Below, piece by piece: positions 1-63,985 of a stretch of DNA of 64,000 nt. Within the stretch, counting starts at the first letter, position 1; each line of letters begins with the position of its first letter. Position numbers and translations under genes: made by a program. This DNA comes from Bugula neritina (taxonomy: Eukaryota > Animalia > Bryozoa), in NCBI GenBank assembly GCA_964035545.1, contig OZ037772.1, forward strand, positions 7,858,889-7,922,888. The letters are read 5' to 3'. The notes under the pieces are model-generated. The model was not told where the DNA came from, made no database searches, and saw nothing but the letters and a program-made list of their open reading frames with translations.

Positions 1-2175
1 TAGAATAGTTGAGAGCATAAATCGTAGAGTCTCCTATTATGTAAAGTGTCGATGATTCTCTAGATATGACAAAGTTTCTAGGATAAGGCATTCTGCATGT
101 ATTAATTGAACCATTTTGAAGCATACTACCATCAGTTTGCAAACGGCATACAGTTGACACAAAAGAGAGAGTCAAGTCTACAACTCTTAGCACATGGTTC
201 TTGTAATCTGTGAGTAGAATCGTTTTGTGGTCTAAGAAGTGTAAATATTTTGGTTCCCGCATTTTCGCACTGCCTAATGCACCGTCATTGTGTCCGAAGC
301 CAGAAATAAGAGTCTCGGGTGAGCTTTCCCAGTTGGAAGATACTCGCATAACACTGGAGTTAGTGGTAAAGTAAAGATATGCACCAGTAAGGTCAAATGT
401 CAGACCAGATATATTTTTGTTAATTTGAGCTATAGTTTGGATGGACCAAGTTGAGCCAACTAGAAGAAGGCACCTAATTCGCCCATCGAGGCTTTCATGA
501 AAGTAGATTTTTTTGCTCTCTGATGGTGATACAGCCATGCCAAATGGATACGCTACTTCCGCAGATGTAAAATCGCCATCCCGTATGCGTCGTATTTTAC
601 CGCATGCTCCAGTAAGATCACTGGTAATATTGGTTAAGCGATCAAGAGTTCTGAAGCAACCATTATCCTCGTCAGAGATCCATATATGTCGATTACTACT
701 CGGGCTCGTGGCTACTCCATTGATATAACCAAATCTTGACTGGCTCTTTCCACCATTAGCATGTCCTCCTATGTTTGACAATCCTCCTATATAGTGTGGG
801 GTTATAAAGTCACTAGTTGTGTAAATACCGTATCCAAACACCACCAAGTAATTTCCTTTTATGAAATCATCTGCCACTATGTATCTACACTGAGGTTGAT
901 TGATGTTTGTTGCAAACAAGTATTTCACTTTGTGAAACTTTATGCTACAAAAAAAGTGTTGAATTATGCAGCTTAAAAAACCTTGTCACTATGTTAAGTA
1001 TACATAAAATATCAACACACAGGACAGTTAAGGGCAACCTTTAGCTGCAGCTCCCATACTGAGGTTTGCATTGTAATCATATTCATATCATATATATAGC
1101 TTGCTGTGTACTTTGTTTATGTAGCACCCATAATGAAATGTTAATAGATGATGCAGCCATAAGTGAGGTTGCTGTTTACTGGTTGTAGTTAGATCGTAGG
1201 CTAAACACTTGTAGGTAGGCAACACACATGCTACTCACAGAGCAATATTATAAAAGAAGCTGAACTACATTTTGAAAGAAATTTCTGATATTTTTAGTAA
1301 GGGTGCCCTTAACTATTCTGAAAAGATTTATTTTTAGAAATTTGGCCTGAAAAAAATTTAGCTGTTACTAAAAGTTTACTATCTGCAAGTTGCTCATTGT
1401 GTATAAGTGTACCTGTTGATGTGATCTTTATACAAAGCCCCTCCATCTGTTGCATGCCAATACAGCTCTAGCTAAAACACAGTTTTTAAAGTTTATCATT
1501 TTTTTTTTCAAAAATTATTTTTCAGTTAAGCAAATAGATACAATGGCAATCATTTTATGATACTTAATTTTTTAGACATGAAACCATAGGTGTATGTCTA
1601 ATGAAGAGATTCATCTAACTTGGTTTGTTTTCAGGCTAGGAATTTTTATTTTCTATTGAGTCACTTTACTTTATTTAGTAAAAAATCTAGACGTTCACAC
1701 CAAAACTTAGATTTTCCTCAAAGTTGATGAAATTTACTTTGAGGAAAATGGGATAATTTTATTTGTTGATTCTGATAAAGTGTAGTCAAAAAAGCTAGAA
1801 AAGGGTCGTACAACATTAGTTTGCCAAATGCATCTATTCAGACCATGATAATTTTTTCATTATAGTCCACACATCTCAATTTACTAAAAACATAGTAAAA
1901 GATATTTAAAATCAAGAGAAATAATAAAATTAACAGTTATCTTCATTCTTTAATATTTTTGATTTAGCTAAACTTTTATACATTTGCATCTATATTTTGA
2001 AAAGTAGTTAAAGAATGTAGATATGGAGTTTGTGCTAAATCAAGTAAAATGACCAAAATACGAGTTATCTTACAGCATACCTAAATTGAAACATACATTG
2101 GTATGATAGGTAAAATATTGAGATTGCAATAGCAATAGAAGTACTCACACAGATTAGTATTGCCAATAAGTACAT
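1..2175 (-). CDS. R1: NHL-like beta-propeller receptor, 5' part (stalk/TM/tail exons lie beyond the window start)
   Basis: Exons 2149-2175 (MYLLAILIC), 1413-1471 (59 bp, LELYWHATDGGALYKDHINS) and 1-944 (open frame IKFHKVKYL...SRFGYINGVATSP...WISDEDNGCFR...GHNDG...[12 protein letters not shown]...YALNYS). GT-AG sites and phases match the paralogs. Missing from the ORF track because there is no stop codon inside the window. Confidence 0.85.
1020..1320. mobile_element. Possible degenerate MITE in R1 intron 2
   Basis: Imperfect 22-bp inverted ends CAGGACAGTTAAGGGCAACCTT / AAGGGTGCCCTTAACTATTCTG. Confidence 0.4.
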
Positions 2176-3305
2176 TCTAAACTTATTTTTCGATATTCAT
2201 AATGCTTAAAAACACAAAATTTTATTCATAGAAGTTAGTTAACTAAACAATATGCATGTAAACTTAAAAATTTCAGTCATGCAAAGTATTTTGCATTTAT
2301 TAATTGAAAAGGGAAATATTTTTTGTCTGATTATGAGATTTGCAGAAATTTTTTTGGAATATCAATATATGACCATGTTGTTTTGTTTTATTGTACATGA
2401 GCCTAAATTTTTTCAGCATTTACATATTATTTGATAAATTCTTTTAAATTGATTTAGCAACAATTTTCTGAAACTTGACAAATTAAATTGGAAGTAGAGC
2501 TTTAATTGGTCTATTTTCCATTTTTTTCTCATCAAGCCATTTATTGGTTGCGCTATTCATACATTTCCTTATATGCAAATGCTTTGTGGTAGCTGGAGCT
2601 ATGCTTGATGAGTTTTATGTGCACTACAAGCGAAATATCATATGCATTCAAGCAGCAACACTTTACAAATCACAAGTATTTCTGGCCAGACAAAAATAGC
2701 TCTTTTGCGTTTTACTTGCTGTCAATATCTTATGCTATTTTTGTGTTTAGTATGCAGTTTAGTTAATTCTTCACAATAAGGTAAATATTAATTTAGCTCC
2801 ACATATAAAACTACAACTCAGGACCGTATGCCCATAATATGTTTGCAGTCATTCAGGATAGTTTCTAATAAAAGTTCATTCGTTAAATGTGCTAATTTGA
2901 CATAAGCTCTTAGGTAAAATCACCTCATCTTCTAATTCACTTTTTGATAGTTCAATATTGTGTTTAGTCATTTTATCACCTTCTACATATACATACAACA
3001 TCTTACTCTTGTATTGGAATAGTGTATCATGTGTAAGGATGTCAATAGAAACCTGCCTGTCCTCTAAAATTATGATAACACAACAGATTTAAGAGAAAAA
3101 TTACTGCATTGGCTGCCGATTTTATAAATAACCTTTCATGCACGGTACATTGCTCACAGAATAGTGTGTATGTCTGCATACACTAAAAAAAACTTGGGGA
3201 TGACAACTGCGGTCATAGCATAAGCCAATTTTTTTATGACGATATGAATTGCACCTGTTGGCATATTGATATATTGCTATGTCATATTTCCATGCATCAA
3301 TGTGT

Positions 3306-3622
<317 letters not shown>

Positions 3623-3825
3623 CTGTAAGAAATCCACAAAGTTTTTATCTTGTTGGTTTATTTTTAGTTTTGCTTCAAGTTTACCAAACTACATTAAACA
3701 CAAATACCAACTTCGTACTTTGCAATAGCAATGCACAATACATTAAAAATTACATTTGAAAAAAGGTAGCATAAAGCAACCGGAGGAATATGTATTTGGT
3801 AAGTCCTGCTGTCAAGATTTTCTAA

Positions 3826-6800
3826 TCACGGAGTTACGAGACTTGCATACATGTCTCCTTCATCAACTTTGATTTTTCCCATGGTTACTGGAAATGAACT
3901 ATAGACTGGATCAGGTATTGGGGCTGGCTGAGAGGGTATCTCTGGCTCAGCCGGCTGCTCAGGTAGCTAAGATAATCATAAATGATGTTAACAGATAGTA
4001 AAGTTAAGTCACAGTTTTTTTAATGAATAAATCTAACTGCTAACTTTTTTGATTGTACAAAACAAAATTTATTTTGGGGTTCTTTCCATTTCAATGAATA
4101 AAAATTCAACTACTCAAGAAACAATAAGTTGACATAAGTTTGTTTTTTGTTAAAGCAAACTGAAAGTTTTCATTGAATAATTACTAATATATTGTATCTA
4201 TTTGTCTGAAACCAATAAACCTAGCATGTAGCTTTGCTTGGATAAATCTTTTTTAGTAACTTGTTTGTGTATTGTAGCTTTTAGTCTAGTAATTTTTTTT
4301 ATTATCTTCAATTAAAATACTTAAGATTTTTGGGAGTTTTGCAAATAAAATATAATGTTTAGAAGAAAAGCTTTACACTGTTATTACCAATTATAACCAA
4401 ATTCTATTCAGCTTTTAAGCCTAGGGCCACAAGGTGCGTATTTTCGCATGGAAAATTGAAATCACAAGTAGCAACGGTGTCCACTGTAGCGTCAGTGATG
4501 CGTGATAAATAAAGCTTTCATTTTTAAATCGCACTCACTTTCAATAAAACGCAATTTACTGGAATGTAGCACTAAAATAAAGAAGTTGGGCTCGCTGAAT
4601 AACTATCAGCCAATTAGGTGAATGCAGAGCGACAAGTGCGAAGGTTTTCTCAACGCTCACAGTGGACACCTTTGCTACTTGTGATTTCAATTTTCGCATG
4701 CGAAAATACGCACAGTGTGGCCCTAGGCTTAATAAGCTATATTGGCAACCAGTTTGCATTTAGTTGCTGCAAGATGTTTTATAGACCCCGTTGAAATGTT
4801 GATTATAATGTTTTAAACAACTTTATTGGTTCAATTCATTTTGCTTCTAAGCAATAAAAAGATTGCAATAGGTTTATCTATGCAGAAAAATAAACTTGCT
4901 AGCGTGTGACGCCAGCTAGGCTTCATTAATATTAATTAGCTGCTATAAAATTGCATTAAATTACTATAAAGTTTAATTTAATTTGAAACAAATGACAAAT
5001 TAGTTTGAAAAATTGGAAACTATGCTATGTTAAAGGGTATATAGATGTTGTCTACATAATGTTATTGTTTCAAAATTAGCATACAAACTAAATCAACTAC
5101 CAATATCTTATTCAGATTCAAAACTGTGAAAGTGCTTACCGTGTTTGATTTGCTCATTTTTGGTGCAGAGTTGGTTTTCTTCTTGCTGCTGCGTTTGCTA
5201 TGCTCTTAAAAAAAACAAAATTGTTGCCATTAAAAAATTTTTGCAAGATATTTACTCACTTTTCTCAACTGCTAGAGAACATAGAGTTAAAAAGGTAAAA
5301 CAATAATAGCATGTTGCTATTTGTGATTGCATATAAAGCTCAAATTGAATTCTTCAATTAAAATTTGAAATAATTTTTAAAAATACCAGTTGAGTTGAAA
5401 TTGCAACAAAGTAGCTTGTTGCAATTGAATAAAGGAAAGTAATTGGCCCATGTTATTGGTTTACTGATTTTTAACAACTTGCAAAAAAAGATAAAAGTTA
5501 AACTCAAACTGAGGAAATTGATTTATTAGTTGATTACTTTTTTTACCACAGAAAGTTTACTATGAGTGATTGAGTGACATTTTGCCATCTCCAAGATTTT
5601 TTTTGTAGTAGAAATAACCTTTGAATAAATATAAATCTGCCAAGTAATCTTTAAGGAAACTATTAGGCTGTGCAGTATAAGCGTGTGGAATACTAAAATA
5701 ACCCAGAATTAAAACAACTAACAAGTTTAAATATACAGACATCAAAAGAAGCATGCTATTGATTCTAGTATTAAAAAAATATATATGTGCTTTAAATAAA
5801 ACAATCGATGAAAATTTTTTTACTGTTCATCAATGAAGTTTGATCAATCAACTTGTCTTTATAGGTTTTATATGATGGCATGTACTATGTGTTTGGTGAT
5901 TTTTATACCTGTGCACATCAATGTAATACTGTTTTTTAACTGCTAAATTACAACACTGCATCAATTAAATATTTTTAAACAATATTGACAAATATGCTCT
6001 ATTGACTAATAACACATGAGGTAGCAAAATATTTAAAAGCTAAAGATATTGTGTTAACGTTAACCTAACTTTTCGTTTTTCTGCACAATTTCACTTACTT
6101 GATCCTTGTAAAAAGTTTTTATCTAAAGCCTTTCAAATTTCATGCATTCATAGGTTTAGATTAGGCATGTTATTACAAAGTATTGATTTAATAAGTTCAT
6201 CAATTAGAATTTTTATATGTTATAATAAAGGTTAGCAACATACTTGACTTTTCCTCGGCTATTGGAGTAATTGCTCCAATGGATTCCTACAAAATTTGCA
6301 TAATTTTTTAATTATTACATAACAGATATTTTGTTTATAATAAAACTTAGCCAGTTTATAGTAGTTATCTCAGTGAGAAACCCCTGATGAAACAGTTTTC
6401 GTTAAATCGGGCTACGGACATGTTCAAATGATATACAGGAGCAATTGTGACTAGCTGATTTTCCTAACATCACCAATGGCCTTTGTCGAGGTTCGAACCC
6501 ACGACTTCGTGTTCACAAAGCAAACGATTTAACCTCTAAACCATGGCTGCTCCCTATTTTGTGTATAATACTGTGTATAAATAAGCTTGTTGAACAAGTT
6601 TAAATTCAACACTAATCCATTTTGCAATTGATTTAATACAAAAAAAAAACGTACCTGTATACCAGCCTGCCAGTGTGGTGTAATAATTTTTGGCTGTTCC
6701 ACTTTAATTGGCACTAGTTTTTCCGGCTCCTCGTAGTCTAAATATAAATTGGTAAAGATTTCATAATACCCAAAAGATTTCTAAAGTTTAAGAATTAGAC

Positions 6801-9679
6801 ATAATTTGTTCAAAGAGTCTCAAAAAAATAAGCTTGAGTTTGTATACATTGTCATTGAAAACTTTTACTAAGCAAACTTTCAAGGTAAGAAAGCAACTTG
6901 CTTTGATCATTTTCAAATGGAACCATTTTTCCTGCATGTTTTTTCTGGCATTACAGGTAGCTTTTAATCAATATAAAGACTAGAAATATTTGCTTTTTTA
7001 AACCATGTACTAATTTTTAGGCCTCTGGCTTTCTAAATGAACAAACCTAAAGAAGTTGGCATCTCTTAAAAACAGATTAAATGTTGTAAGAATCAGTTAG
7101 CGGCTTTGGGGTGCTGCCAAAATTTTATATACGGAGTCATCTCTGATGAGTTTGACTAACACACAATGTTACTGTTTCTCCAGTATTAAGTGTTGCAGAC
7201 AATAAATTCCACTACTTACTCTGTGTGCTACTTTGTCTCAAAGGTACAAATATTGCAGCTAATAATACCAACACAATTACTCCGCTCGCTGCAATAATGC
7301 CCATGTGTTCAGCTGAAATCAGTCTTTTATAGGTTGTAGTTATTACAGGTGCATCGGTGGTAGTAGTAAGTCCTGTTGATTAACACAATCATTTACTTGT
7401 TTATACATGGAAAGTTTAAAGAACATGTCAAGCAGTTTTAAGTTTGACTGTAGTTTCTATGATGTAATAGTCAAGACACTAGCTTGCATGATGCAGGTGT
7501 CCGGTTCAAATTTTGTCTTTGGTACAAATATCTTACCACCTATTTGACTTGCAGTGATACATAAATACTCTAAACAATTTAGGAGACCAGCAAATCCTAA
7601 GAGCTACAGCAGTAGAAAGAGATCCAGACAAAATCTCTATGGTTGTCATATGTTGAAATTACCCAACCCCCCCCCCCCATGAGGCAAGGGTTAGTACGCA
7701 AAGTTTTAAATTAGAGTTGATGACATGTAACATCAATTAAAAGTAATTATTTTACAAAAATATGAATAATGTTTTTTGTCAGAAATTAGTGTTCTCCAAT
7801 TTTAGAAAACATTCATAACTTATATAATAAAAACACTTTTACAGGCAAAAAAATTATATATACAAAGTTCATCAGATTTAAAACTGTGTGTGCAACGCTA
7901 AAATATTTATTCCGTCTAAATTGTCAACGTCTAAAACCTCACCTGAATATTGAAGAGAGTAAACTGAATAATCCCCAATGATGTAGATTTTCGAAGATTC
8001 CTTGGATACGACAAAATTTCTTGGAAGTTGCAATTTGCAAGTCTCAATTGGACCACTTTGGGCCATGGCATCATTTATCTGAGGGACGCATATAGATGAC
8101 ACAGAAACACTTTCTAAGTCAATCAACCGTAGGACATGGTTGGTGTGATCAGCAAGTAGAAGAGTGTTGTCATCTAAAAAGTGTAAGTACCTTGGTTCTC
8201 GTATACTTGAAGTCTCTATTGAACCATCATTATGACCAAAGCCGGAAAGAATTTTTTCGGGTGCACTTTTCCATGTGGAAGATAAACGAATAACACTGGA
8301 GTTTTGGCTAAAGTACAGGTATGAGCCAAGTGGGTCAAAGGTCAAGCCATATATTTTTTTGTCTAAGAAGTTTACTGTTCGGACGTACCAGGTTGGGGTG
8401 ACTTTTAAAAGACATCTGACAGTTCTTCTTTCGACTTCGTAAAAGTACACTTTACTACTCTCTGCTAATGATACAGCCATGCCAAAAGGATAGGCAACAC
8501 CTGCGTATGCAAATTTGCCGTCGACTACAGAGCGGCCCAAACAGTTTCCTGTAAGATCAGTGGTATAGTTATTTTCTCTATTTAGAGTTCTGAAACACCC
8601 ATTATCCTGATCGGAGATCCATATTTGTTTATTACTAATGGGGCTCGTAGCAATTCCATTGACATAGCCAAATCTTGAAATCTTCTGATCACCATTAACA
8701 TACCCCGCCAAACTTTCATCTCCGCCTATCTGATTTAAGTTTATAAAGTCACTGGTAGTATAAATGGCATACCCAAGAACTAATAAAAAGTTTCCTTTTA
8801 CATAGTCATCTGTAACTATGTAGCGGAAATCCGGACCATTATTATCAAGTTCTAACAAAACTGTTATTTCTTCAAATTTCATGCTAAAAAGTATAAAAGT
8901 ATTTCAGTTATACAATTATTTCACAACATTCCCCAATCTAAATTAGCTAAATAAATAGGAAAAACAAGAGAAATCAAGCAAAATTAAAAAAAAATTTTGA
9001 TTATTCAAGTGTATTTATTGATGTTTTACTAGTTTTGGGCAAAAGCCCATATTCATTAGCGGCTAAATTGTGAAAAATAGCTAAAAATTAAAAATTTCAA
9101 GGATGTACTAAATTAGGTAAAATGACCTTGATGCTAAAATACAAAAAATAAATACAATGATTGAATTAAACTTGATACTTAGGTAAGACCAACATAGTTC
9201 AGCAAATTATTATAATGTCACATAATGACCAAATTTACTAACATGCATACATACAAGTTTCCAATGTGTGACAATTTACCTGTCGGTTTGATTTTTGTAC
9301 AAAGCAGCCCCATAAGTTGAATAGAAGCTTAATTTTATCTAAAACATAAGTAACGCCATATTTATATTTTCATATTTCAAGTTTGCGGTGTATCGATATA
9401 ACATTTTTTGGTGAAAATAAAGTTCAATATCTTGGTGCATCATATACTCAAAATAGTCTATGTCGTTATACCACCGCATTTATGGTAGTTTTTTGAAATA
9501 TTACAGTTTAACTAGCCTAGCTCACTTTAAGCATGTCCTGATATGAATCTCTTTCCATCCAGTATAACATAAATCAAAAAGATATGATAGCTAAAATATT
9601 GAGACTTTTCAAAATGAAATATCAGTGTTCATATACTTACGCACGAGAAAACAACCAATAGGCACGTTTTGAATTTCAT
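3826..9679 (-). CDS. R2: NHL-like propeller type I membrane receptor with a bipartite Tyr-motif tail
   Basis: Exons 9641-9679 (MKFKTCLLVVFSC), 9280-9338, 7943-8883 (941 bp propeller), 7220-7372 (stalk + TM GIIAASGVIVLVLLAAIFVPL), 6655-6737 (NYEEP...), 6244-6286, 5140-5204, 3826-3966 (...DPVYSSFPVTMGKIKVDEGDMYASLVTP*). All GT-AG and in frame. Confidence 0.85.
4419..4728. mobile_element. MITE family A, copy 1 (R2 last intron)
   Basis: About 70-bp terminal inverted repeats starting GCCTAGGGCCACA, in a TTAA/TAA context; near-identical copy at 42480-42823; no coding capacity. Confidence 0.9.
6352..6554 (-). mobile_element. tRNA-derived SINE
   Basis: Minus strand starts GGGAGCAGCCATGGTTTAGAGG (A box) ... 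GGTTCGAACC (B box). The body is shared with copies at 11551-11740, 42829-43035 and a fragment at 12224-12290. Confidence 0.75.
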
Positions 9680-10333
9680 TTCCGATTCGCATAATACTTC
9701 AATTAAAAAAAATATTTATAAACAACACACAGTTGTAAATTTGAGAATTTCAAACATGCAAAATATTGCATAGTTGTTCTCAGTTTAAAGTTTTTAATTT
9801 AACATCCGCAAAGCACAAAGTTGTTTTAATTATCAACACAATTTTAATGAACTTTTAGTTATCGATTTTATTGGATGATCACATAAGGATTTAATTTGCT
9901 TTTCTGTTCCGCATTTGAAAATATTTTAGGTAGAATAAAAAAGTTTTTAACTTGACAAATTCGAATTGAAATTATTAATAATCTTGAGCTATACTATAAA
10001 ATTAACTTAGTTTTGACTTGTTTTCTTTATTAGTTGAGGTCGAGTGGCAGAACTTTATTATTTTGGGAGTTGTGCACTGCATGGCTGGAAAAATGATTAA
10101 CTTAAATAAATATCTTTATTATATATTGTTAATAGTTGTACAATGAACTTTATTATATGTCAGTTAGCTCTGACGTTTAGCTTTTACATCGCAGGCCACA
10201 CGATGTCTGAATCCACTAACTAGTTCTAATATGAAGCATCTGGTATCGACATAATATAACACTACATTGCTCATTTTTAAAAAGTTGTAAGACAGGAACT
10301 TAATATTATTTTAAATGAGCGTTTTTCTTGCAA

Positions 10334-10673
10334 CAGGGCTGTCCCACAGGCGGCCCCAGGAGCAGATGTGGTGTCAAACCTACATTTTTTGGCCCTCAAA
10401 GGCAAAGAACTAATATTATTTCTTACACGTACTGCACATAAATTAAAGCAAAACACCAGCTTTTAAGTGTCTTACTTATGCAAGAGCTAAAAAACATGCA
10501 GGCTGCATTAGCTATTGGAAATTTATTGTGTGATGATTCATAAAAACTTGGAATAAAATAATTTGAAAATTACTGACGCTGTGGCTTAGCACAAGCTAAA
10601 CTTCACAATGTGGCCCTTGTCACCAAATATTATTTTTCAGTGGCCTTCGATCTAAAAAGGTTGGACAGTTCTG
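10334..10673. mobile_element. Old hAT-like non-autonomous element
   Basis: Imperfect TIRs CAGGGCTGTCCCAC / GTTGGACAGTTCTG with internal GCGGCCC/GTGGCCC motifs typical of hAT MITEs; no clear TSD. Confidence 0.5.
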
Positions 10674-11368: not shown

Positions 11369-16320
<4,952 letters not shown>

Positions 16321-17740: not shown

Positions 17741-22926
<5,186 letters not shown>

Positions 22927-24706: not shown

Positions 24707-30302
<5,596 letters not shown>

Positions 30303-31917: not shown

Positions 31918-35784
<3,867 letters not shown>

Positions 35785-43867: not shown

Positions 43868-43963
43868 AGCCAAATTAATTACAATTTTGACTCACAAAAT
43901 ACAATTTGCTTATAAAATTTGTAGCTAGCAAAACGAAAAAGCTGAAACCTCAAAAATGCTAGT

Positions 43964-44816: not shown

Positions 44817-44890
44817 AAGCTTAAACATTGTCAGCTTATTCCAGTTTGCACTATAGTGCAAACTGGAATAAGCTGACAATGTTTAAGCTT
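44817..44890. repeat. Perfect 74-bp palindrome
   Basis: AAGCTTAAACATTGTCAGCTTATTCCAGTTTGCACTA|TAGTGCAAACTGGAATAAGCTGACAATGTTTAAGCTT; no mismatch, no spacer. Confidence 0.97.
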
Positions 44891-46631
44891 TTTTCTTTTG
44901 TAAAGTTAACTGCTGGTATATATACTATTTGTTGCCAACATATCTGTCAGTGTATCCCTTTGACATACCTCGTAGAAAATGTTATTTTTTTGTTGAAAAT
45001 TTATTTATAGACATTATCAATTTAAAAATTTTATTTTCAACAGGAAAAAACAATCTGAAAGAATAACTTGTAGATTATAATAACATACTGTTTATTTTTT
45101 TGTTGATTGGCAAGTTGATTAATTTATAAAAAGTTGTTTTTGACAAAGGAGAACAATCCCAGTTATAGTGAGAAGATTTTTTTCGAGGATAAAAACAATA
45201 TTGTTTTCAGTCGTATACTAATAACAGTGACAACAGAAGTTGACTGTCATGTCCTTTACCGCTACAATATATGTGAAGTTTGATTAGGAAAAATACATAA
45301 AAAATAATACAAAATAAATAAATTGCATGGAGAGCAAAATTTTATATAATGCAATCATATGAAGAGCAACTTAGTTATGCTAGTGAAATGTTTTTATATT
45401 AAGAAAGCACAAATTTGCACGCTAATTCAAATGAACAAAAACTGAAGGTTGAATGTTTCAATTTTATGGAGAAAATGTCAAGCAAAGCATTCCCGACTCA
45501 CAATAAATTCCATGCATTGCAGTCCTTTTATTATGTTGCTTTGCATATTGTATATTGCAAATCTACAGTAAATGGTTGTGCGAGTGCTACCATCATTACG
45601 TTAGAACTTCTACCACAACATAAAACTTCTTCCATTAACAATAATAACTTAAATATATTTTACTCACTTTTTTATTTGCTGCATTTTATAAATGTTGTTT
45701 TAAAAAATTTAAACTATATATAAAAGCAACCAAGCCATAGCATCACACTAAACACATTTTCTACATGAACGAGACTAATCATTTGTTATTTATGTTTAAG
45801 TAGTTATTGCCAACTACATTTTAGCAAATAACAAAAGTTTTCAATAATTTTTTGCAAATTTCTTTAAATTTAAAGTTTATTTGTCTTTTGTAGAACTACA
45901 TTAGACATATTTTTAAAAAATAAACAGCAGGCGAGAATTACCACGCATCAATTTTTGTTTTAGCAAAAGCAAAAATGTTACAGATAATAAAGTTTTTAAT
46001 GCTACATTTGCAGGATAAACTAAATATTTATTTTTAAATCTTTTTGGCTATAACCAATAAAGCGAATTTGAATTGAATGTAGCACTGATCATGGAAATCC
46101 CTGCTCTTTCATACTATCTTCTGGTACTCTTTCTTTTATTTTTGATAGAGAGATTTTCTAGAAAATGTAGGTGACGATAAATTTCTAAAAAAACAGCTGT
46201 ATGTCATGGCTGATTCAGCAATTAACAATCAAGTATACAAAACAAATCTGTATCAAAAATAAATCATTAGAAGATATATGAGATTTATATTTGACCATAA
46301 GAATGAAACATATATATTGCCATATAATATAACTAACATTGAAATATGTTTCGTAATTCAACACTAAATACATTTGACATGTAACATGTTCAAGCTGCAG
46401 CTTTCGGAAAACCTCCAGTGTTTCTTACAGTAACAAAGTTAATTTTCAAAAAGAAATATGTAGTTCAATTAATCAGGCTAATAATGATTTCTGTTTTACT
46501 AAAGAGTTTGGTAATGGAAATTAAAATACAACTCTATGAAAAAAATCAGTAGTTATAGAGCTATATGTTTAAATTCACTCACTTGGTTTTATAGCCTGCT
46601 CAGTAAAAGTCACGTTTGAATAATTTAGTTC

Positions 46632-47928
46632 TTAGTGTGGTGTCACCCACACAGGGACTGACTCGTACCCTAGATAGAAACTACATGGTGTTTTTACAAG
46701 AATATAAGCAAGGAAAATTCACCTAAGATTTTATCTATATAGTAATTCAGAAGTTCATATGCTATAAAATTATTATGGGATGGGCAAAAACTTTATTGAC
46801 TCTGTACTGATGCAATATCAGTATATAATATGACAATGGGAGCAGTTTATTGTATTTCTAAAGATTTTAGTTATATTTTCAAGAAAGAAACGTATATACT
46901 TGTGTGGTAATTTGAACAAATAAAATAAAATGAATAAACTACTTTGAAAGCTTACCCGCTGAGAACGGAATTGTATCAACATTAAACGGATGGTTAGTAA
47001 GTGCAGCAACAGGACCATGATCTATTGGAACAAAAAAAAAAAACTTTGTTGGTCCTCCTTAGACTTAAGCTCGCATTTAGTGTGTTTTTACTAAATACTC
47101 AATCACTAAAATTTGATCATGTAATATATATTTGTGTTTACTTGTGTGCACAAGCGTGTACATGTGTATACCGCCGAATTAATCCTTGAATATATAAATG
47201 AAATAAATTGAGCTGCCTTAAAAACTCACCAAAATTAGCTGGTATAGGATTAACACTGAGACGCCTTATGGCAGGTGGTAGTCTATCTCTATGAGCTGAT
47301 AAACCTAAAATAAGTATTCTATAAGTCTAAAAAATTTCAATTTACAGTCTGGAATAGAGTATTGTTTCACTTAAATATGTTTGGTTGAATAGGTAAATTT
47401 TGCCAGAAAGAAGAATATCCTAAAAAATTCTTGATCATCGAATCAACATCACCTTCTAAAAATAAGTTTAGCAGATTAGTTCATTGATTGAAAAAATACA
47501 TTATGAAAATACTTTGGTATAGTTTAGGTAAAAAATTAGTTTAGCAAAGACTCACTTTTAGAATGCAATTGTTTCGTTGCGAAGACCAAACATACCAACA
47601 GAAGCGCTATACCCAAAAAGCTTGCCATTGCAATACCTATTATTTCAAATTGAGTTGTTTGCTTAGAACTCTGTGATAGGTTATCAATAATCTTTTGTAG
47701 TCTGTAACAGTTCTTTTTTGTAGTATTAACAGGCCCTCTTGCTAAAAAACCCTTATTATTTTTATTATTATTATATATATAGGCTACATATATAGGCTTG
47801 AGTTTACACACCTTTTAAATATGCTTTAGTAAAACTATAAGTTTCTACTATTGCGAAGGTGTGGGCCGTGGTACTCTGTTCTGTGCTGATGAGGGGACAA
47901 ACCCCAAAACAGCTGCTGTCCACAGATT

Positions 47929-48021
<93 letters not shown>

Positions 48022-49993
48022 CATACTAAGTTTATTTTCATAACTTTTAGTTTTTTTTACTCATATAAAATGAACATCAAAAAAAATTCATGTTGCTTCT
48101 AATCATTGCCATAAGTTCAAGTAGCATTATAATAAATACAGTTTTGCTGTTTTTGCAAGACAGTTATACCTGAGTAAAAATTTAGATGAGAGAAAATTAT
48201 TTACAGAATGATAAGCAGATACAAACTTGGTATTCTGGCAGACTGGGAGCTTAAAGTGTAGACAGATTTTTCACTACTGGTGCTGCTTGTTTCAAGATTT
48301 ACTGTAGTAGCTTTGGCTGTGGTTGATACTAGCAGTGGTACAGGGGTGGTAGTAGTATCAGGAATACTTTTAGGAGTAATAGTTGTAGTTGTATGAGCAC
48401 TATTTTTAATAGTAGGAGCGATAGGAGTAGTTGTAGGAGCATTAGTTGTAGTTGTAGGTGTTGTTGAAGTAGTAGTAGTAGTAGTAGTAGTGGTCCTAAC
48501 AACTTCTAAAATAAAAATAATAAAACTTTATGTTTGCATAGCAACTTAAGTCAAGTAAATTTAAAAAAGATATAGCTGACAAACTTACCTGAGTATTTGA
48601 GCTCGTAAATTCCAAAATTTCCAATGATGTAGACTTCATTTGAAACTTTGGATCGGACAATCTGTCTAGGATATCTGATTTGACATGTGTGAATTGGACC
48701 GGCGCGATCTGTATGGGAAATGCCTGAGCCAGAAACGCAAATAGATGATACAGAAGAGCTGTTTAGGTCTACCAACCGCAAGATTTGGTTGTTGTTATCA
48801 GCTACCAGAAAGGTATTGTTGTCAAGGAAAAGTAGGTATCTTGGATTTCTCATTCTTGCAGTGTTTAGTGGTCCATCATTGTGTCCAATGCCTGAAAGAA
48901 CATCCTCAGCAACCCCCTTCCAATTTGAAGATGTTCTAATGATTTTATTATCAAAGCTGATGTAAATGTATTCACCAAACAGGTCAAAGCTCATTCCAAA
49001 TACGTTCCTCGCTAAATAAAACACTGTACGAATGTACCAAGTTGACCCTACTTTAATAAGGCATCTGAGGTTCCACTGTCGACTCTCAAAAAAGTATATA
49101 ACATCAGTTTCAGATGGTGAGACTGTCATTCCAAAAGGATAGGCCGTTCCAGCTAAAAGAAATGGACCATCTTTTACATCTGATTGCCGACATTTTCCAG
49201 CAAGCTGGGATGTAACGTTGTATCTCCGATCAATTGTCCTGAAACAACTATTCCCCTGATCTGAAACCCATATGTGATTGTTACTTGCCGGGCTTGTTGC
49301 TATTCCATTTATATACCTAAAACGTGCACTTGAACCATCTAAATACCCCTCGTGAAGTTTTTCTCCACATATCCAACTCATTACTCTAAGATCACGGGTG
49401 GTGAAGATTGCATAGCCAATCACTAGCAAGTAGCTTCCTCGAACGTAATTGTCTTCCACGATGTAACGGAAGTCATTACTTCCACTTCTTCGAAGCAAAA
49501 TTCTCATCTCCTCGAACTGTATGCTAAAACAGATTATTGTGCAGGTTGAAACATTGTTAGAGATGTTTGCTAAAACTTTTGAACTTCTGTTGCAGACCGC
49601 AACAGTTTAATTTAATCACATATATACTAACTATGATCAGTGTATACAAGCATGCAGGTTTTCTTAAGTTGAGTTTTACCTGTCAGTTCGATTTTTGTAC
49701 TCAACAGCTCCATAGGAAGAATGCCAATACAGTTCTACCTAAAACATTTTTAGTAATTACATCTTCGGTTTACTATTGATGAATAAAATATTTATGTTAA
49801 TTTATTTTTGAAAGCTTTATCAAAAGAAAAACTATTTTATGTAATAAGAGATAAGGTGGTGATGTGGTCATGTGATTGTCCTTGTGTGTGCATATGCGTA
49901 TGTTTGCATCTGTTTGTGTGTATGTGCGGAGTAATGTACCTTCATGTATCCTAATACCAAACTTACACAAATCAAGATCATTTTGAAGTCCAT
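46632..49993 (-). CDS. R8: NHL-like propeller receptor with a separate mucin exon; nonsense codon just before a canonical ITIM
   Basis: Exons 49967-49993 (MDFKMILIC), 49680-49738, 48589-49523 (935 bp), 48227-48505 (Thr/Pro mucin), 47556-47741 ([24 protein letters not shown]), 47230-47304, 46956-47021, 46583-46669 ([21 protein letters not shown]...). Confidence 0.78.
47880..47926 (+). ncRNA. Degenerate type I hammerhead ribozyme motif (PLE/retrozyme remnant) in an R8 intron
   Basis: TCTGTG-CTGATGA-GGGG-ACAAA-CCCC-AAAA-CAGCTGCTG-TC-CACAGA: stems I-III pair, but the core GAAA reads AAAA. Adjoins a (TA)n tract. Confidence 0.65.
47932..48019. repeat. (TA)n microsatellite, R8 stalk-TM intron
   Basis: Seen directly. 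Confidence 0.96.
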
Positions 49994-50241
49994 AACTCAA
50001 TTAATTACAACTTTAACTTTAACTCCACATTTCATTAGAAATAAAAGTTGACTCATAAAACATTCCATTTGAAATTTGAACATAAAGATATATAGCTTGA
50101 TCAAAAATTTGAAAAATGAATTTTTGAGTCAAATTATATTTTCTATTTTTATTGGTTTCTCTTATTTATTTTTACACTTAAATAAAAGGTTTAAGTTATT
50201 TCGATATTCTTTTAGACAGAAAACTCTTCAAAGTACTCAAA
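49994..50241. promoter_or_regulatory. Candidate bidirectional promoter between R8 and R9
   Basis: Only 248 bp separate the divergent ATGs; contains TGACTCA (50049-50055) and TGAGTCA (50125-50131). Confidence 0.5.
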
Positions 50242-52860
<2,619 letters not shown>

Positions 52861-53164
52861 CACTATAAGCAGGTCTTTTCAAGTGATTTTCGTTTTTAGA
52901 TCTTTGTTTTTGAAATAATTATAGAGAAATAATTATGATGATACTTAGTGTAATGTTACCCATTTCACAATTCCTATTTATAAGCATTACATACAAAATA
53001 CTTCAACAATTTTTTGATAAAGCTGAATATGAATTTACAAATGTTTTAATATTATACTAATTGCTCATTTGTTAGCAAAACATTCAAATATTATGTTTTC
53101 AAAAAATAAAGGTAATATAAATATATCTCACTAATCTTTAGTTACTCCAATCAAACATTCGGAA

Positions 53165-54083
53165 GCAACTTCTCTCCTGATCTGAAACCCATATGTGATT
53201 GTTACTTGCGGGCTTGTTACTATTCCATTTATATACCTAAAACGTGCACTTGAACCAGCTAAATACCCCTCATAAAGTTTTTCTCCACATTATATACAAC
53301 TTATTACATCAAGATCATGAGTGATGAAGAATGCATAGCCAGTCACTAGCAAGTAGCTTCCTCGTACGTAGTTGTCTTCCACAATGTAAAGGAAGTCACT
53401 ACTTTCACTTCTTTGAAGCAAAGTTCTCATTTCTTCTAGCTGTATGCTGAAACAGATTATTGGGCTAGTTCGAACATTGTTAGAATCTATAATGTTTGCT
53501 AAGACGTTTGCGCTTCTGCTGCACAGCACATCAGGTTAATTTAACCACATATACTAATTATGATCAATTTTACCTGTCAGTTTGACTTTTGTACTCAACA
53601 GCTCAATAGCATGAATGCCAATACAGCCCTTTCTGCAAAAATTTTAGTAATTACATCTTTGGTTTACTATTGATGAATAAAAATTCAATTTTAGTTTATT
53701 GTTAGAAGCTACCTGAAAAGATAAACAAGTTGATGGAATAAAACATAAGGTGATGACGCATGAATAAGCTGTGTACAATCAAGCAGGCTCAGCGTCATGT
53801 GATTGGCCTTGTGTGTGCATATGTTTGTGTATGTGTACATGTGTTTGTCTGTGTGCACATGTGTTTGTGTATGTGTACATGTGTTTGTCTGTGTGCACAT
53901 GTGTTTGTGTATGTGTACATGTGTTTGTCTGTGTGCACATGTGTTTGTGTATGTGTACATGTGTTTGTCTGTGTGCACATGATAAAAATGTCTAACATCA
54001 AAATGACAGACTATGCAGAGTGATGTACCTCTCTTTATCCTAATAATAGACTTACAAAAAACCAAAATCATTTTGAAGTTCAT
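53165..54083 (-). pseudogene. R10 pseudogene: truncated, degenerate copy of the R8 5' end
   Basis: Exon 1 54056-54083 is 28 bp (frameshift versus 27 bp in R8). Exon 2 53574-53632 has TGA where R8 has GGA. The propeller exon from 53446 has an in-frame TAA and a 1-bp deletion and breaks off at about 53165. Confidence 0.88.
53821..53980. repeat. 40-bp minisatellite, 4 copies, in R10 pseudogene intron 1
   Basis: Unit GTGTTTGTGTATGTGTACATGTGTTTGTCTGTGTGCACAT. Confidence 0.93.
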
Positions 54084-54335
54084 AACCTAATTAATTGCCA
54101 CTTCAACTTAAGCCCCATATTCTATTGGAAATAAATGTTGACTAATAAAACATTTCATTTGCAGAATTAAAAAGATTTTTTTATCCATAGCTTCAATCAG
54201 AAATTTGAAGAATGAATTATCAACTCAATCAATATATTTTTTTTTTGGTTGCTCTTGGCTACTTTTACACTTCAATTGAAAAATTTAAATTATTTTGGTA
54301 TTCTTTTAGACAGAAAAGTCTTCAAAATACTCAAA

Positions 54336-58812
<4,477 letters not shown>

Positions 58813-59540
58813 CAATGTAAGCAGGTCTTTTCAAGTAGTTATGGTTTTAGAATGTTTGTTTTGAAAATAGTTTTAATAGAATAATAATGATGATACTTCA
58901 TGTATTGTTACCAATTTTTACAAATCCTATTTAGTATTACACAAAAAAATACGTTGACAATTTTTTGATGGAGTTGAATATAAATTTATAAGTGTCCTAA
59001 TATTATACTGTTTGCTCATTTTCTAGCAAAACATATTTTAGATGAAATGTTTTAAATGATAAAGATAATATAAATATTGTTTACTAATCTTGCAAGATTT
59101 TTGCCAGATTTTGCGTAAATGTTATTACACTAAAATATATATATATATGCAAACTGAAATAGTAGCATTATAATATTGTTATATATATTTTTTTATATTC
59201 AAATTGCTTTTTGATTCATGTAATTTCGAATAATTTTTTCATCAGATTTTTAGTTTTAAATTTTTTAATCATGTTTTTGAAGTCATCTCATGTATACACA
59301 TTTCTCAATTGAGCCAAGCATGCGTTTCCTTTGCTAAGCACACTTTGTGGAACTATTATCAACATTAATTTTAGTTGTGTAACAGCTTTAAGCTAATCTG
59401 GTCCTCAACCATCACCTTTGTTTCAATGCTCTCAGGTGATTTTTTTTCTTTTTAGAAACTTGAGTCATTATATTTAATATTAGTCATATGTTTTATTAAC
59501 ATTATAAAAGGTTTTTTAAAAATCATGGTTTCAATTTGGG

Positions 59541-62500
59541 CTACAGACGAGTGGATGTGTAGTTATAAGGGTAGAGTCGAGATGCTGGCTGCCCTATTGA
59601 GCCTTGATATGAAGTAGAACCTATCAAGTAGAACAATAAACTCAATCACAGATTTCACCAATTTCTTTCCACAGAAAAAATATTTTTTTATAACTTAATT
59701 TCAATTTTGCAGACTTTAACGGAAAGTCAGCTTAAAATTTAATTTTATGGTGGAATGATAAAGCGCTGAACCTCACACTTATGCATACAGAGTAAATTTT
59801 TCTTGATGGCAATTTGCTAAAATCAATTATTCTAATTTTAAAACAAAGGAATTATATTTGCTGTTAAACACACAATAATTTATCACTCATACAGCCTTTG
59901 ACAAAAAAGACTCGTTAAATTTGTATGTAAACCTAAGTTCTAAATAAAAAAGGTATTGGGTGAGTAATTTTGATGCACTCACCTCTGTCTATGTTTGACT
60001 TTGACTTCAAACTTTTCCTTGAACCTAGAATACAATAAAACTCTTTTAGAGCAGTTACAATTGGTTAGCAAGACTTTGGTATAATGTGACATTTTGACAA
60101 GCTATGGAATAGTTGGGAGGCTGACTAGCTGATATATTGACTTATTATGAAAATGGTACGCCGAAAACTTTGACTAATTAAAATATAGACTAGCTGTAAG
60201 GTTGGCTAGTTGGAAAACTAATTTTAGTTGACTGCTCTAAATTTTGACCAACCATGTGAAAAATTTAAATAGTTTAAATGTTGAAAAACTGACAGTGAAA
60301 CGTAGTATCATCAATACTATAGTCCGCTATTACAATATATCTAGATTAGTGCAAAGTTTTACGAGGACTAAAATTTTTAAAATAACCAACTGTGAAGTGT
60401 TTAGGTGATTAAACCAAATAGCCTAAATCACAAAAGCAGCAAATGAAAGCAGTACTAAAAATAGTTGCTGAATCATAGTTCATGTAAATATAAGTCTTGA
60501 CAGCACAAACTGTGCAGTCTACGCCTCACTTAGCAACCATCATCTCTATTCGTGAACACAAGGATTATACCAAATTTTGATCTTTTTGAGGCTTTATTTT
60601 TCTTCTTTTTCTTCCTACCGCTATCTGTAAAAAAAAGCTTCAACTAAAAAATGTGAAGCAGCAGTTCATGGCTGACATGCATAGAGCAAATTTGTTGGCG
60701 AGAACTAGGTATGCTACATAAATTTTTTAATATGATACATGTATATAATATACATAATAGCATGTATATTTAAAATAATTCATATTATGTAAACTATGTA
60801 ATATAATGCAGACTTTTGTGAATTGTGATGTTTGTATTGAAACTTGTAATACAAAGTATACTATATTACACCAGAGTGTTATATATGTCAAGTATATTTT
60901 GCGTATGACATAAAGCAAAAATTGTTTTAGCATTAGCTTCGAAAAATGTATCTAAATTTTTTCAATACTGAAAAGAAAATTATTTACTAAACTATGAACA
61001 CTATCTTTCATCTTATAAAACTGGTAGTAGCATAATACTGTGATATCTCATACAGAAAAGTTAGTACATTGTGATATGGTTGAATAAAAGTCACTGGTAA
61101 AATAAATTTGGTTTTAATTTTGACTAAATCTAATTCATTTTATTATAAATACAAAACATTTGATTTTAAAGTCAAAATAGTACACCTCTTTATATTACTC
61201 TTCTTATAGACAATATCTTGCTATATGAATTTAAAACTGTTGCTAATGATTTGTCATTTTCAGACTTTTAAAGCTTACTGTTTCACTGAGCATTTGCTTT
61301 GTTAAATCTAACCTCAATGTCAAAATGATATTGTAGTGAATTTTAGCGCATAGGCTAATAACTTGAAATTTGTCTTGCTAATTGTTCATTTTATAAAGTA
61401 AACTTTATGCAATTATTTAAGCTGATTTTGGCCAAGAATCAGAAGTGTGAGAATGGCGGGCCCGACTGAGTGTCGGATCAAATCTAACTAAATCAAATTC
61501 TATTTGCATGTTGAGGGCTCCAACATCTTCATGAGAACTCGGATTCTAGAACGTGATCAGCAAAAGATTTTTGAAGGGACTTTTTGCCAGTATATATAGA
61601 GGCGAGCTCACAGACTAGATCAATCTACCACTGGAGCTCGCTGGATTAAGACACACAGGACAACAAGCTGAGATATAGACTATTCTACTTATTACAGACA
61701 ACCTTTCCTGTTTCTTATATTACAGAGTTATGCTCCCCCACTTATTGCATTCTACCTACAAAACTACTACAAGACCACATTTTGCATTAACATACATACT
61801 TTTCTGCTGAGCCTTGCTGTGAGTGGTTGCTAAGGCAACAATAAGCAACACTGCCATTGAACCAAAACCAACAATGGCAACAGTCGTCTGGTTTTCTTTC
61901 AGCCAAGAACTGCTATTTGCAGCAAGTTGCTGAGCTTGCAGGCTTTCTGTGGTGTTGACTATCTGTCTGGTAATGAGAGGTTCTGTCACCCAAGACGCTA
62001 AAATTAACCAGACTCACATCTGAAAACATCGGCAAGATAAAGTTTTCTTGACAAGTGGCTGTTGAGAATTGATCTTTAATCAAAAATGTAATTTTATGTT
62101 TCAAGTTATAAATCATTTACTGAAGGGTTATCATATTTATGCTTATAAGCATTACACTTGGTCAATGTTTTCTAATTATTAAAGTGAACATCAGTTAAAG
62201 CTATGAAGGACAAAAAGCAAGTGTCAACCACTATTGCGTCACAAAACAATTATTTTTACAAGAACATGTGCAATTTTGTTTACCTCCCAACGTCAATTTA
62301 TAGATGGAAGTTTTTCCAGTAATAAAGAACCCAGAAGGAGACTTTGCCATGTGCATTGGTAACATCACCTTACACTTACTAATAGAATTTTCATAGTCAA
62401 TGCCAGTTACTTCTGGAGAAGTACAGACAGAAGATACTTTGTTTTGGTTCAAATCAACCAATCGTATTGCGCTGTTTCCATAATCCGCCACCAAGATTAT

Positions 62501-63985
62501 ATTATCTGTTATAAAAGTAATGTGCTTTGGGTTATCCACTTTAGAGATGTTGAGGAAGCCATCAGAGTATCCTGCACGATCAATGGAGAGAAGATATTTA
62601 AACTTACTCCACTCCCCAAGCCGAAGAATCAAGACGTTGGTCTTGGTAGCCAGATAAAGTATTTTTAATGACAAGTTTATGACAAAACTGTGCACAGTCT
62701 TTCTAAAAGAGGAGAGCGTAATGACATACCAAGTATAATCTCTAAAACAAAGACATTTGATTTTGCCAGCATTGTTATCGTATAAGTAGATCTCATTGGG
62801 TTGGTTTGAGCGCCTCACCAGCTCTATAGGTTTCCCCAGCTTGGCGACATCAAACTTGCCGCCATTATCACCGTTATTTTTGCACCTCCCAGTTACGTAG
62901 CTTGTTTTGTTGTTTTTGCGATCCAAGTCTCGTATGCAATGATTAGAATTGTCAGCAATCCATAAACGCCCATCTTCTCGGGGTGACGGAATAATTCCAG
63001 AAATAACACCGAATCTAGCTACAGAACCAGTTCCTTCCTTGTAACCATTAGATATCGAACTACCAGCTAACAGTTGGAAACTTTTAAATTCTTTGGTCGT
63101 ATATAAAGCAAATCCTGCAGCAAGTAGGTAATGACCTTCAACGTATGGGTCTTGTGTCATGTAGTTAAAATTGATATTGGCTTCAGCTTGTAAATCAGTT
63201 CTTGTGTATACTTGCTCTATACTCTCAAACTTTACACTGAAAATCGATTAGTCAAAACAAAATATTAATTTGAATTTTAAAAAAAAACTCGTCAAGCAAA
63301 TTTAACTACAATGCTTCAGTATAGTGTTCAAATATACCTGCAATATTGATACAGCATCACAGCATAAAACTCTATAAACAACAGAAGTTCTTAATGCATT
63401 AGAAATTAAACAATAAAAACTATTGCTTCAGTCAAATCAGCATTTAACAAACTAATGAGTATATGTACTATTGGATTGAAAAAAAGCTCATCCCTGCAAG
63501 AATTCTCTGATTTATAGCGCTTTTGTTAAATCCTGCTAAGACGTTGTGTTTACTAAGCCTTATGCTCTAACCCCTTATAGGCAATTTTTAGACTTACCAA
63601 CATTAATATTTACTGATATTATAAAATCTTCATGTGCCCCAACTCGTGGTAAGTTTTTATGACAAAAATTGTTCAGTTTTTCATTAATTCTCACAAGTAT
63701 TGATTTTGCCAATTAAATATTTTTTCATTGTGTCACACTTATTCTATTAAAGATGTTAATAATTAATTCATACCTTCCTATAGTGTTTGTGTAGCGGAAT
63801 TTTCCTTTTACTGGTAGTAGATTCTCTACTAACTGCAATCAACAAGAATTATTATATGAGAAAATCATAAAAGTTAGGAATCAATTGCCATTACTAGGAT
63901 AAAATGACACAAATTATTAAAGATAAAAAATTGTTATTATTCCAATGTTACTTACATATAATAAAAACACTAACTTTTTAATCAT
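59541..63985 (-). CDS. R12: most divergent NHL-like propeller receptor; basic tail ending in a PDZ-type motif
   Basis: Exons 63956-63985 (MIKKLVFLLY), 63774-63832 (59 bp, same length as in the paralogs), 62284-63236 (953 bp), 61800-61997 (TM VAIVGFGSMAVLLIVALA), 60571-60624, 59983-60024, 59541-59620 (GSTSYQGSIGQPASRLYPYNYTSTRL*). The tail exons are less certain than the 5' exons. Confidence 0.75.

Follow-up and report, generated by a model that had tools for sequence, protein, structure and literature searches.

What does a dense tandem array of divergent propeller genes in a bryozoan genome encode, and does it mark self or recognize something else? The question is raised by the 64,000-nucleotide stretch of Bugula DNA analyzed here (hereafter, the window), which corresponds to positions 7858889-7922888 of contig C8 in a 216-Mb assembly. 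A preliminary description of this DNA had seen in it 12 tandem receptors, each with a signal peptide, an NHL-type beta-propeller, a stalk, a single transmembrane (TM) segment, and a tyrosine-motif tail, and had proposed a non-immunoglobulin immune or allorecognition locus. The structural pattern is genuine and well beyond what chance would produce, and our analysis supports a predicted, undescribed family of propeller-based surface receptors, for which an immune or other ligand-recognition role is possible. We think it probable that the array encodes single-pass type I membrane glycoproteins that form a germline repertoire of surface receptors with conserved ligand specificities. A fixed, anciently diversified receptor repertoire is the best reading of the data and fits them better than a self/non-self marker locus.

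An array of about 70 propeller genes

Searches by tblastn with the large open reading frames (ORFs) showed that the window contains 11 intact paralogous propeller ORFs and 1 fragment of 250 bp, so that the tandem array of the preliminary description stands, but its count of 12 genes does not. All 11 propeller exons in the window are open. The genes are spaced about 6.5 kb apart in AT-rich, eukaryotic DNA (GC content, 27-35%) that is rich in dinucleotide microsatellites, and no further conserved coding block was found between them. A profile search of the whole assembly detected at least 65 near-full-length copies on contig C8, 59 of them at 7.58-8.03 Mb and 6 at 8.71-8.73 Mb, together with 1 additional near-full-length copy on contig C3 and scattered weaker matches elsewhere. 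Almost all of these copies are open, a stop codon being present in only 2 matches. The window thus appears to be a slice of a tandem array of about 70 genes, the bulk of it on one chromosome, a family size that the preliminary description had left to be checked. Thirty-three of the approximately 70 copies were analyzed in detail (the 11 in the window and 22 further copies from the same chromosome), and searches and fold prediction used the products of the propeller exon (exon 3) rather than spliced proteins. A second, more distant tandem cluster of about 13 copies lies on contig C2 (24670526-24831405); it matches profile positions 13-248 only, with E values of 1e-20 to 1e-29, and was left out of the detailed set.

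One window ORF is 89% identical to "hypothetical protein EB796_020354" of Bugula neritina. The 30.8-kb B. neritina contig that carries this gene (L001) is collinear with window positions 25326-14387 at 72-81% nucleotide identity, introns included, which points to a close relative or sibling species of the draft-sequenced B. neritina as the source of the window DNA. In an exhaustive protein search, the family-like matches formed about 25 clusters of unspliced ORFs of 270-400 amino acids, and the remainder were giant multi-NHL proteins; likewise, all family proteins in libraries of 1.84 billion and 5.8 billion proteins were unspliced ORFs of 270-410 amino acids. Every named member is a "hypothetical protein" of B. 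neritina, the public annotation of which treats members as single-exon hypothetical proteins. Outside the Bugula sequences, the closest relatives found were NHL/TEN_NHL proteins from bacteria or metagenomes, with E values of 1e-33 or weaker, and literature searches on NHL-propeller receptors in bryozoans found no description of the family. These results agree with the earlier remark that no described family of this architecture was recognized, and the array has so far been seen only in Bugula-type bryozoans.

Gene architecture

In every gene the propeller is carried by exon 3, an internal exon with AG/GT flanks. Its length is 941 bp in five genes and 935, 953, 971, 977, and 977 bp in the others, in all cases 2 modulo 3, and the 22 further copies from the same chromosome likewise have AG/GT flanks and lengths of 2 modulo 3 (890-977 bp; mode, 941 bp). 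The acceptor has the form ag|N followed by a hydrophobic residue, K/Q/E, and F/L; the donor lies in codon phase 1; and intron phases are conserved across the family. Upstream of every gene is an exon 1 consisting of an ATG and 9-14 mostly hydrophobic codons that ends at gtaagt. Exon 2 measures 59 bp in 9 of the 11 genes (g0-g7 and g10), the exceptions being g8 and g9 with 56 or 62 bp; it is conserved between paralogues and open in one frame only. The conserved exon sizes noted in the preliminary description are borne out by these figures.

Downstream, all 10 complete genes have a stalk and TM exon in which a 19-residue hydrophobic segment is followed by basic (K/R-rich) residues, and the stalk preceding this segment is Thr-rich in most genes, in line with the Thr-rich stalk described earlier. 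A 43-bp exon is present as claimed, in five genes (g1, g2, g3, g4, and g6), and comparison with B. neritina and among paralogues revealed two additional small tail exons, exon 5 (77-83 bp) and exon 7 (65-134 bp). In g1, g2, and g3 the frame closes through eight exons, the 43-bp exon among them, with canonical splice sites save for one GC donor in g2. When exon 5 of g3 is compared with B. neritina, the four changes are synonymous third-position changes in the predicted frame. The hydrophobic exon 1, the 19-residue TM window, and the basic residues after it fit a predicted type I single-pass topology, which was judged from hydrophobicity and inspection. As far as it can be predicted from the DNA, then, the proposed succession of signal peptide, propeller, stalk, single TM segment, and tail is supported. 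The features of the window are as follows (exon lengths in parentheses; coordinates are window positions).

1-2175, minus strand: g0, 5' part only, exon 3 cut by the window start; exon 1, 2149-2175; exon 2, 1413-1471 (59 bp); exon 3, 1-944.
3829-9679, minus strand: g1, complete eight-exon model closing in frame; exon 1, 9641-9679; exon 2, 9280-9338 (59 bp); exon 3, 7943-8883 (941 bp); TM segment, 7245-7301; exon 5, 6655-6737 (83 bp); exon 6, 6244-6286 (43 bp); exon 7, 5140-5204 (65 bp); last exon, 3829-3966, with the end YSSF-x14-YASLV.
11372-16320, minus strand: g2, complete eight-exon model with the GC donor at exon 6; exon 1, 16279-16320; exon 2, 15880-15938; exon 3, 14812-15752 (941 bp); TM segment, 14267-14323; exon 5, 13711-13790 (80 bp); exon 6, 13140-13182 (43 bp); exon 7, 12584-12654 (71 bp); last exon, 11372-11515, with YSGI-x14-YASLL.
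17744-22926, minus strand: g3, complete eight-exon model and the reference for the fold, orthologue, and allele tests; exon 1, 22888-22926; exon 2, 22486-22544; exon 3, 21336-22312 (977 bp); exon 4, 20885-21058 (stalk and TM segment, 174 bp); exon 5, 20432-20508 (77 bp); exon 6, 19824-19866 (43 bp); exon 7, 18676-18746 (71 bp); last exon, 17744-17977.
25515-30302, minus strand: g4, last exon not identified; exon 1, 30264-30302; exon 2, 29416-29474; exon 3, 28321-29261 (941 bp); TM segment, 27825-27881; exon 5, 27211-27290 (80 bp); exon 6, 26511-26553 (43 bp); exon 7, 25515-25648 (134 bp).
33121-35784, minus strand: g5, recent duplicate of g4; exon 1, 35746-35784; exon 2, 35010-35068; exon 3, 33800-34740 (941 bp); TM segment, 33121-33177; a weak, possible last exon, 31921-32073, with AYATF.
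36738-43867, minus strand: g6, long Thr/Lys-rich stalk; exon 1, 43826-43867; exon 2, 43272-43330; exon 3, 41504-42444 (941 bp); TM segment, 40126-40182; exon 6, 38967-39009 (43 bp); last exon, 36738-36878, with YAMF-x14-YESLL.
46115-49993, minus strand: g7, tail probably truncated; exon 1, 49967-49993; exon 2, 49680-49738; exon 3, 48589-49523 (935 bp); Thr-rich ORF, about 48270-48530; TM segment, 47578-47634.
50242-52800, plus strand: g8, head-to-head with g7, divergent subfamily; exon 1, 50242-50268; exon 2, 50619-50680 (62 or 56 bp); exon 3, 51077-52053 (977 bp); stalk and TM exon around 52732-52800; tail exons not found.
53141-53388, minus strand: fragment of a g7-like propeller exon, profile positions 1-82, with one TAA.
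54336-58750, plus strand: g9, tandem duplicate of g8; exon 1, 54336-54362; exon 2, 54715-54776; exon 3, 55604-56574 (971 bp); stalk and TM exon around 58684-58750.
61828-63985, minus strand: g10, divergent subfamily; exon 1, 63956-63985; exon 2, 63774-63832 (59 bp); exon 3, 62284-63236 (953 bp); TM segment, 61828-61884.

A predicted NHL-type propeller ectodomain

An AlphaFold2 model of the g3 exon 3 product, built with the paralogue alignment, has a mean predicted local distance difference test score of 88.3, a predicted template modeling score of 0.86, and 24 strands; these can be grouped into six blades of four strands each, with the N-terminal strand completing the last one. In Foldseek comparisons the top matches, with query-normalized template modeling scores (TMq) of 0.60-0.75, were the NHL domains of SOQ1, human NHLRC2, and TRIM71, a teneurin-like protein, and NHL surface proteins of Bacteroides. 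Consistent with this result, the family profile matches the solved structures of SOQ1 (1.7e-20) and NHLRC2 (5.7e-18), and distant homologues carry PF01436 and PF25021 (TEN_NHL). Single-sequence Pfam NHL matches are weak, three of eight exon 3 products exceeding the 20-bit cutoff. On this model, the ectodomain is a six-bladed NHL-type propeller of about 313 amino acids (Pfam PF01436, clan CL0186), in agreement with the preliminary description. A YWTD propeller of the LDLR type was considered and rejected, since NHL propellers dominate the best 20 Foldseek matches and YWTD propellers rank lower; the propellers of LRP4, LRP6, and ApoER2 appear among the weaker structural matches.

Four cysteines are invariant both in a 14-row alignment (A1) and in the alignment of the 33 copies, which also have 0-7 N-glycosylation sequons each; the cysteines and sequons together fit an extracellular domain. 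The conserved positions of the 33 copies hold Gly, Asp, Trp, Cys, Arg, Pro, Thr, and Phe; none holds a histidine shared by 32 or more of the 33 sequences, and no catalytic-looking residue set was found in them. Peptidyl-alpha-hydroxyglycine alpha-amidating lyase (PAL) is a membrane-anchored NHL-type propeller enzyme with a conserved metal-binding histidine triad and a catalytic Tyr/Arg. A PAL-like enzyme was rejected on the absence of a conserved histidine in the 33 sequences and of PAL among the 50 best structural matches listed. Column entropy is 1.5-2.1 bits in the strands and 2.3-2.5 bits in the loops.

The resemblance to teneurins (TMq of 0.75 to the teneurin-like protein) raises the possibility of a cell-adhesion or cell-identity code, in which homophilic or heterophilic contacts specific to each paralogue would pattern tissues, zooids, or neurons, much as teneurins or clustered protocadherins do. 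The NHL-type ectodomain, the many conserved and individually maintained paralogues, and tails that could couple to the cytoskeleton would all suit such a code. It is nevertheless unlikely, given that there is no EGF, YD-shell, or cadherin context, that the genes are predicted to encode type I rather than type II proteins, and that they share no constant exon.

Predicted cytoplasmic tails

Last exons were resolved for g1, g2, g3, g6, and a neighboring gene, L006 (two copies), and all of them end in the cassette Yxx(F/I)-x14-Y(A/E)(S/R)L(V/L), 4-9 residues before the stop codon. In g3 the first tyrosine of the cassette is replaced by Phe, although the B. neritina orthologue has Tyr at this position. 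The draft contig of B. neritina (L001:7300-7660) also shows, in the last exon of this orthologue, a frame change in a Pro-rich repeat and a 47-nucleotide length difference relative to 17744-17977, which may be an indel of the draft assembly or may be genuine. A profile search found the two-tyrosine last exon in five genes only, four of which lie in the window; the other subfamilies (g7-g10 and most further loci) have different tails.

The preliminary description had called these tails Tyr/ITIM-type (ITIM, immunoreceptor tyrosine-based inhibitory motif). That label is not sustained. Position -2 relative to the conserved C-terminal tyrosine is occupied by D, E, G, or R, which does not fit an ITIM, and tyrosine-motif last exons were found for only four window genes; the consensus (I/V/L/S)-x-Y-x-x-(L/V/I) fits only g2 (LYYSGI) among the four resolved window last exons. 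The canonical immunoreceptor tyrosine-based activation motif (ITAM), YxxL/I-x6-12-YxxL/I, does not describe the cassette either, given its 14-residue spacer and a first motif that in most cases has F as its last residue. No charged residue lies inside the hydrophobic core of any of the 10 window TM segments, so that the charged TM residue by which short-tailed members of paired activating/inhibitory receptor families of the KIR/LILR type recruit an adaptor is missing from them. In g7, an exon resembling exon 5 (about 46583-46669, minus strand) reads VTPH, an in-frame TAA, and then ELNYSNVTF, a perfect ITIM consensus behind the stop, which suggests that g7 may be a tail-truncated, perhaps short-tailed, member.

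The cassette could be an ITAM-like or hemITAM-like docking site, or it could consist of YxxPhi sorting signals. The latter would be expected of endocytic or scavenger receptors, in which cargo, whether soluble or particulate, would be captured by the propeller and the C-terminal YxxL and YxxF would serve for sorting by AP-2 rather than as phosphotyrosine switches. Endocytic receptors with propellers are known from the LDLR family, Y(A/E)(S/R)L(V/L) at 4-9 residues from the C terminus and Yxx(F/I) both fit YxxPhi, and the weaker matches to the LRP4, LRP6, and ApoER2 propellers point the same way. With a strict 14 residues between its tyrosines and with acidic residues ahead of the second, however, the motif looks more like a tandem-SH2 docking cassette, and the best fold matches are NHL rather than YWTD propellers; we therefore give an endocytic role a low probability, on a par with that of an adhesion code.

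Age of the array, selection, and allelic variation

The paralogues are 29-52% identical to g3 in the 14-row alignment. In a maximum-likelihood tree of the 33 copies, the median terminal branch is 0.55 changes per site, there are few recent pairs, and neighbors tend to group. From these sequences the copies of the array are judged to be old. Few pseudogenes are found in the array, and g2 and g3 have 1:1 syntenic orthologues in B. neritina; a picture of rapid, KIR/LILR-like birth and death is not supported.

Ratios of nonsynonymous to synonymous divergence (dN/dS) were calculated by the Nei-Gojobori method, for paralogues in pairs with dS below 1. Recent paralogue pairs have dN/dS values of 0.25-0.38, g4/g5 and g8/g9 each having a dS of 0.31 and a dN/dS of 0.33. 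Against its syntenic B. neritina orthologue, g3 has a dN of 0.060, a dS of 0.47, and a dN/dS of 0.13, and the corresponding dN/dS for g2 (L001) is 0.18; orthologue dS is about 0.5, and intron divergence is about 0.25. These values point to purifying selection on g2 and g3. They also bear on the notion that the array is nonfunctional or mismodeled DNA, made up of decaying duplicates or repeat-element ORFs. The family has no transcript support, and the B. neritina annotation consists of single-exon hypothetical proteins, as this notion would predict. We consider it extremely improbable, because nearly all of the at least 65 chromosome copies (33 of 33 in the detailed set) are open despite saturating synonymous divergence, orthologue dN/dS is well below 1, exons without single-nucleotide polymorphisms (SNPs) lie beside SNP-dense introns, and intron phases are kept family-wide.

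Alleles were compared in contigs of DNA of the source sample over 21220-23100, a test that covers one gene (g3) in one individual. A single full-depth unitig with 0 differences spans 21224-22414, which includes all 977 bp of g3 exon 3, and exons 1 and 2 of g3 also lie under full-depth unitigs with no heterozygous site. In g3 introns 1 and 2, by contrast, the contigs split into half-depth allele pairs with 27 SNPs and 1 indel in about 500 bp. Variation is thus confined to the predicted introns, which supports the g3 exon model. The intron heterozygosity of the sequenced individual, about 5% (22385-22900), is very high for an animal. The g3 orthologue of B. neritina encodes an identical 327-residue protein in four datasets, which may not be independent, with 0-3 silent differences in the ORF and 3-19 differences outside it.

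These data bear on the proposal that this is an allorecognition or histocompatibility locus, in which highly polymorphic propellers would mark colony identity and decide between fusion and rejection. The animal is colonial, the array is a large tandem set of predicted surface proteins with divergent ectodomains, and the NHL domains of teneurins are reported to confer homophilic specificity, which was counted in favor of allorecognition. Extreme ectodomain polymorphism was not seen, however, either in g3 of the one individual or in its B. neritina orthologue in the four datasets: a homozygous exon 3 beside introns with about 5% heterozygosity, together with an orthologous protein that does not vary, is the opposite of what a hyperpolymorphic self-marker would lead one to expect. 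Moreover, the copies appear old, and the 1:1 syntenic orthologues of g2 and g3 are conserved. The allele and dN/dS comparisons speak against the allorecognition proposal of the preliminary description, which we now regard as very unlikely, and the array is a poor candidate for the long-sought bryozoan allorecognition locus.

Duplications and mobile sequence in the array

A direct tandem duplication of about 3.9 kb, in which 49241-53138 was copied to 53162-59091 at about 80-85% identity, is the source of g8 and g9. The duplicated unit begins within exon 3 of g7, which runs in the opposite direction, and takes in the 5' part of that exon; it ends at 53138. This starting point explains the orphan propeller fragment at 53141-53388. 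The distal tail exons of g8 may have been lost in the same event. The g8 copy lacks about 1.5 kb that is present in the g9 copy (57000-58467), where inverted repeats were seen at 57256-57541 and 58038-58478. A 193-residue ORF without a Pfam match (57368-57949, minus strand) falls within the segment missing from the g8 copy; we take its motif to recall the GIY-YIG nucleases of Penelope-like elements. A transposon-borne ORF was also considered as an account of the propeller ORFs and rejected.

Two copies of a repeat of about 350-500 bp, which share about 90% identity, are found at 4414-4732 (the g1 tail region) and at 42475-42965 (directly upstream of g6 exon 3); the repeat is probably a mobile element. 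In several genes, a long dinucleotide microsatellite opens intron 3 within a few dozen bases of the exon 3 donor, (CA)n in g2 and g3 and (TA)n/(TATG)n in g4 and g5; the tracts lie at 14410-14575, 21102-21213 [(CA)n, g3], 27985-28315, and 33250-33795, and also at 3122-3759. Tracts in this position, which separate the ectodomain exon from those for the TM segment and tail, could favor unequal crossing-over. Just outside the window, the nearest paralogue of g10 (L012:5447) has a near-identical propeller exon (dS, 0.13; dN/dS, 0.31). In a comparison that also took in L020:5474, its stalk and TM exon is near-identical to that of the next, very different gene, and it looks like an ectodomain/tail chimera between neighbors.

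Proposed function

How might such a repertoire work? In the receptor reading that we favor, exons 1 and 2 would supply a short signal peptide, and a single exon would encode a six-bladed NHL propeller ectodomain with its four invariant cysteines. A stalk, in most genes mucin-like and rich in Thr, would lead to one TM helix followed by basic residues, and the low-complexity, Ser/Lys/Pro-rich cytoplasmic tail would be spread over four small exons, ending in the two-tyrosine cassette in one subfamily. Ligand specificity would reside on the propeller, conserved and distinct for each of the old paralogues, and binding would be reported via phosphorylation of the tail tyrosines or via internalization driven by YxxPhi.

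Several points weigh against this reading. Splice junctions, expression, and protein ends are inferred, the sole public run that contains the window DNA being of the DNA type, and the topology rests on hydrophobicity and inspection. The tail exons of g5, g7, g8, g9, and g10 are not resolved, and the g7 tail has an in-frame stop. In addition, variability is not concentrated on one face of the propeller: mean entropy is 2.26-2.53 across the four loop classes, an evenness from which no binding surface stands out.

Invertebrates, which lack antibodies, build recognition repertoires from large tandem receptor families, and to our knowledge the known ones use immunoglobulin (Ig), leucine-rich repeat (LRR), lectin, SRCR, or fibrinogen folds. 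It is tempting to speculate, and we put this forward only tentatively, that the approximately 70 NHL-propeller receptors provide a non-Ig, non-LRR means by which bugulids recognize microbes, symbionts, or settlement cues, with a separate ligand for each paralogue and with the ITAM-like x14 cassette recruiting a tandem-SH2 kinase. If this is true, the NHL propeller would be a new ectodomain scaffold and the cassette possibly a new signaling motif. Immunity, the handling of symbionts (such as the bryostatin symbiont of Bugula), and the sensing of settlement cues by larvae are almost without molecular handles in Bryozoa, and the single-exon annotation leaves the family invisible to comparative studies.

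Comparison with known systems

The array resembles the KIR/LILR, Siglec, and Hydractinia Alr families in consisting of tandem genes for predicted single-pass receptors, which have divergent ectodomains and carry tyrosine motifs in their tails, and in including at least one apparent chimera of the ectodomain and tail of neighboring genes. It differs from them in having a propeller rather than an Ig or lectin fold, in having members that appear old and are conserved between species, and in lacking visible allelic hypervariability, a canonical ITIM or ITAM, and a charged TM residue. Allorecognition systems of the Hydractinia Alr1/2 and Botryllus fuhc type show extreme ectodomain polymorphism within populations, whereas g3 has 0 differences in exon 3 in one individual. 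The tail cassette shares with ITAMs and hemITAMs two tyrosines at fixed spacing, the second in a YxxL that follows acidic or glycine residues (as in DEGxxYASL). Its first motif, however, usually ends in F, and its spacer is 14 rather than 6-12 residues.

With teneurins the array shares a cell-surface NHL propeller (Pfam TEN_NHL in teneurins; TMq of 0.75 to 9ifo) as a putative recognition module. A teneurin, though, is a giant type II protein that also has EGF repeats, a YD shell, and a toxin-like end, whereas the array is predicted to encode type I proteins of about 500 amino acids that consist of signal peptide, propeller, stalk, TM segment, and tail, with no other domain. The closest relatives in both profile (5.7e-18 and 1.7e-20) and structure (TMq of 0.71-0.74) are NHLRC2 and the NHL domain of plant SOQ1, which are likewise six-bladed NHL propellers. 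In those proteins, the products of single-copy housekeeping genes, the propeller is joined to a thioredoxin-like domain; in the array it appears to stand alone, as the ectodomain of a predicted membrane protein, and has been amplified about 70-fold.

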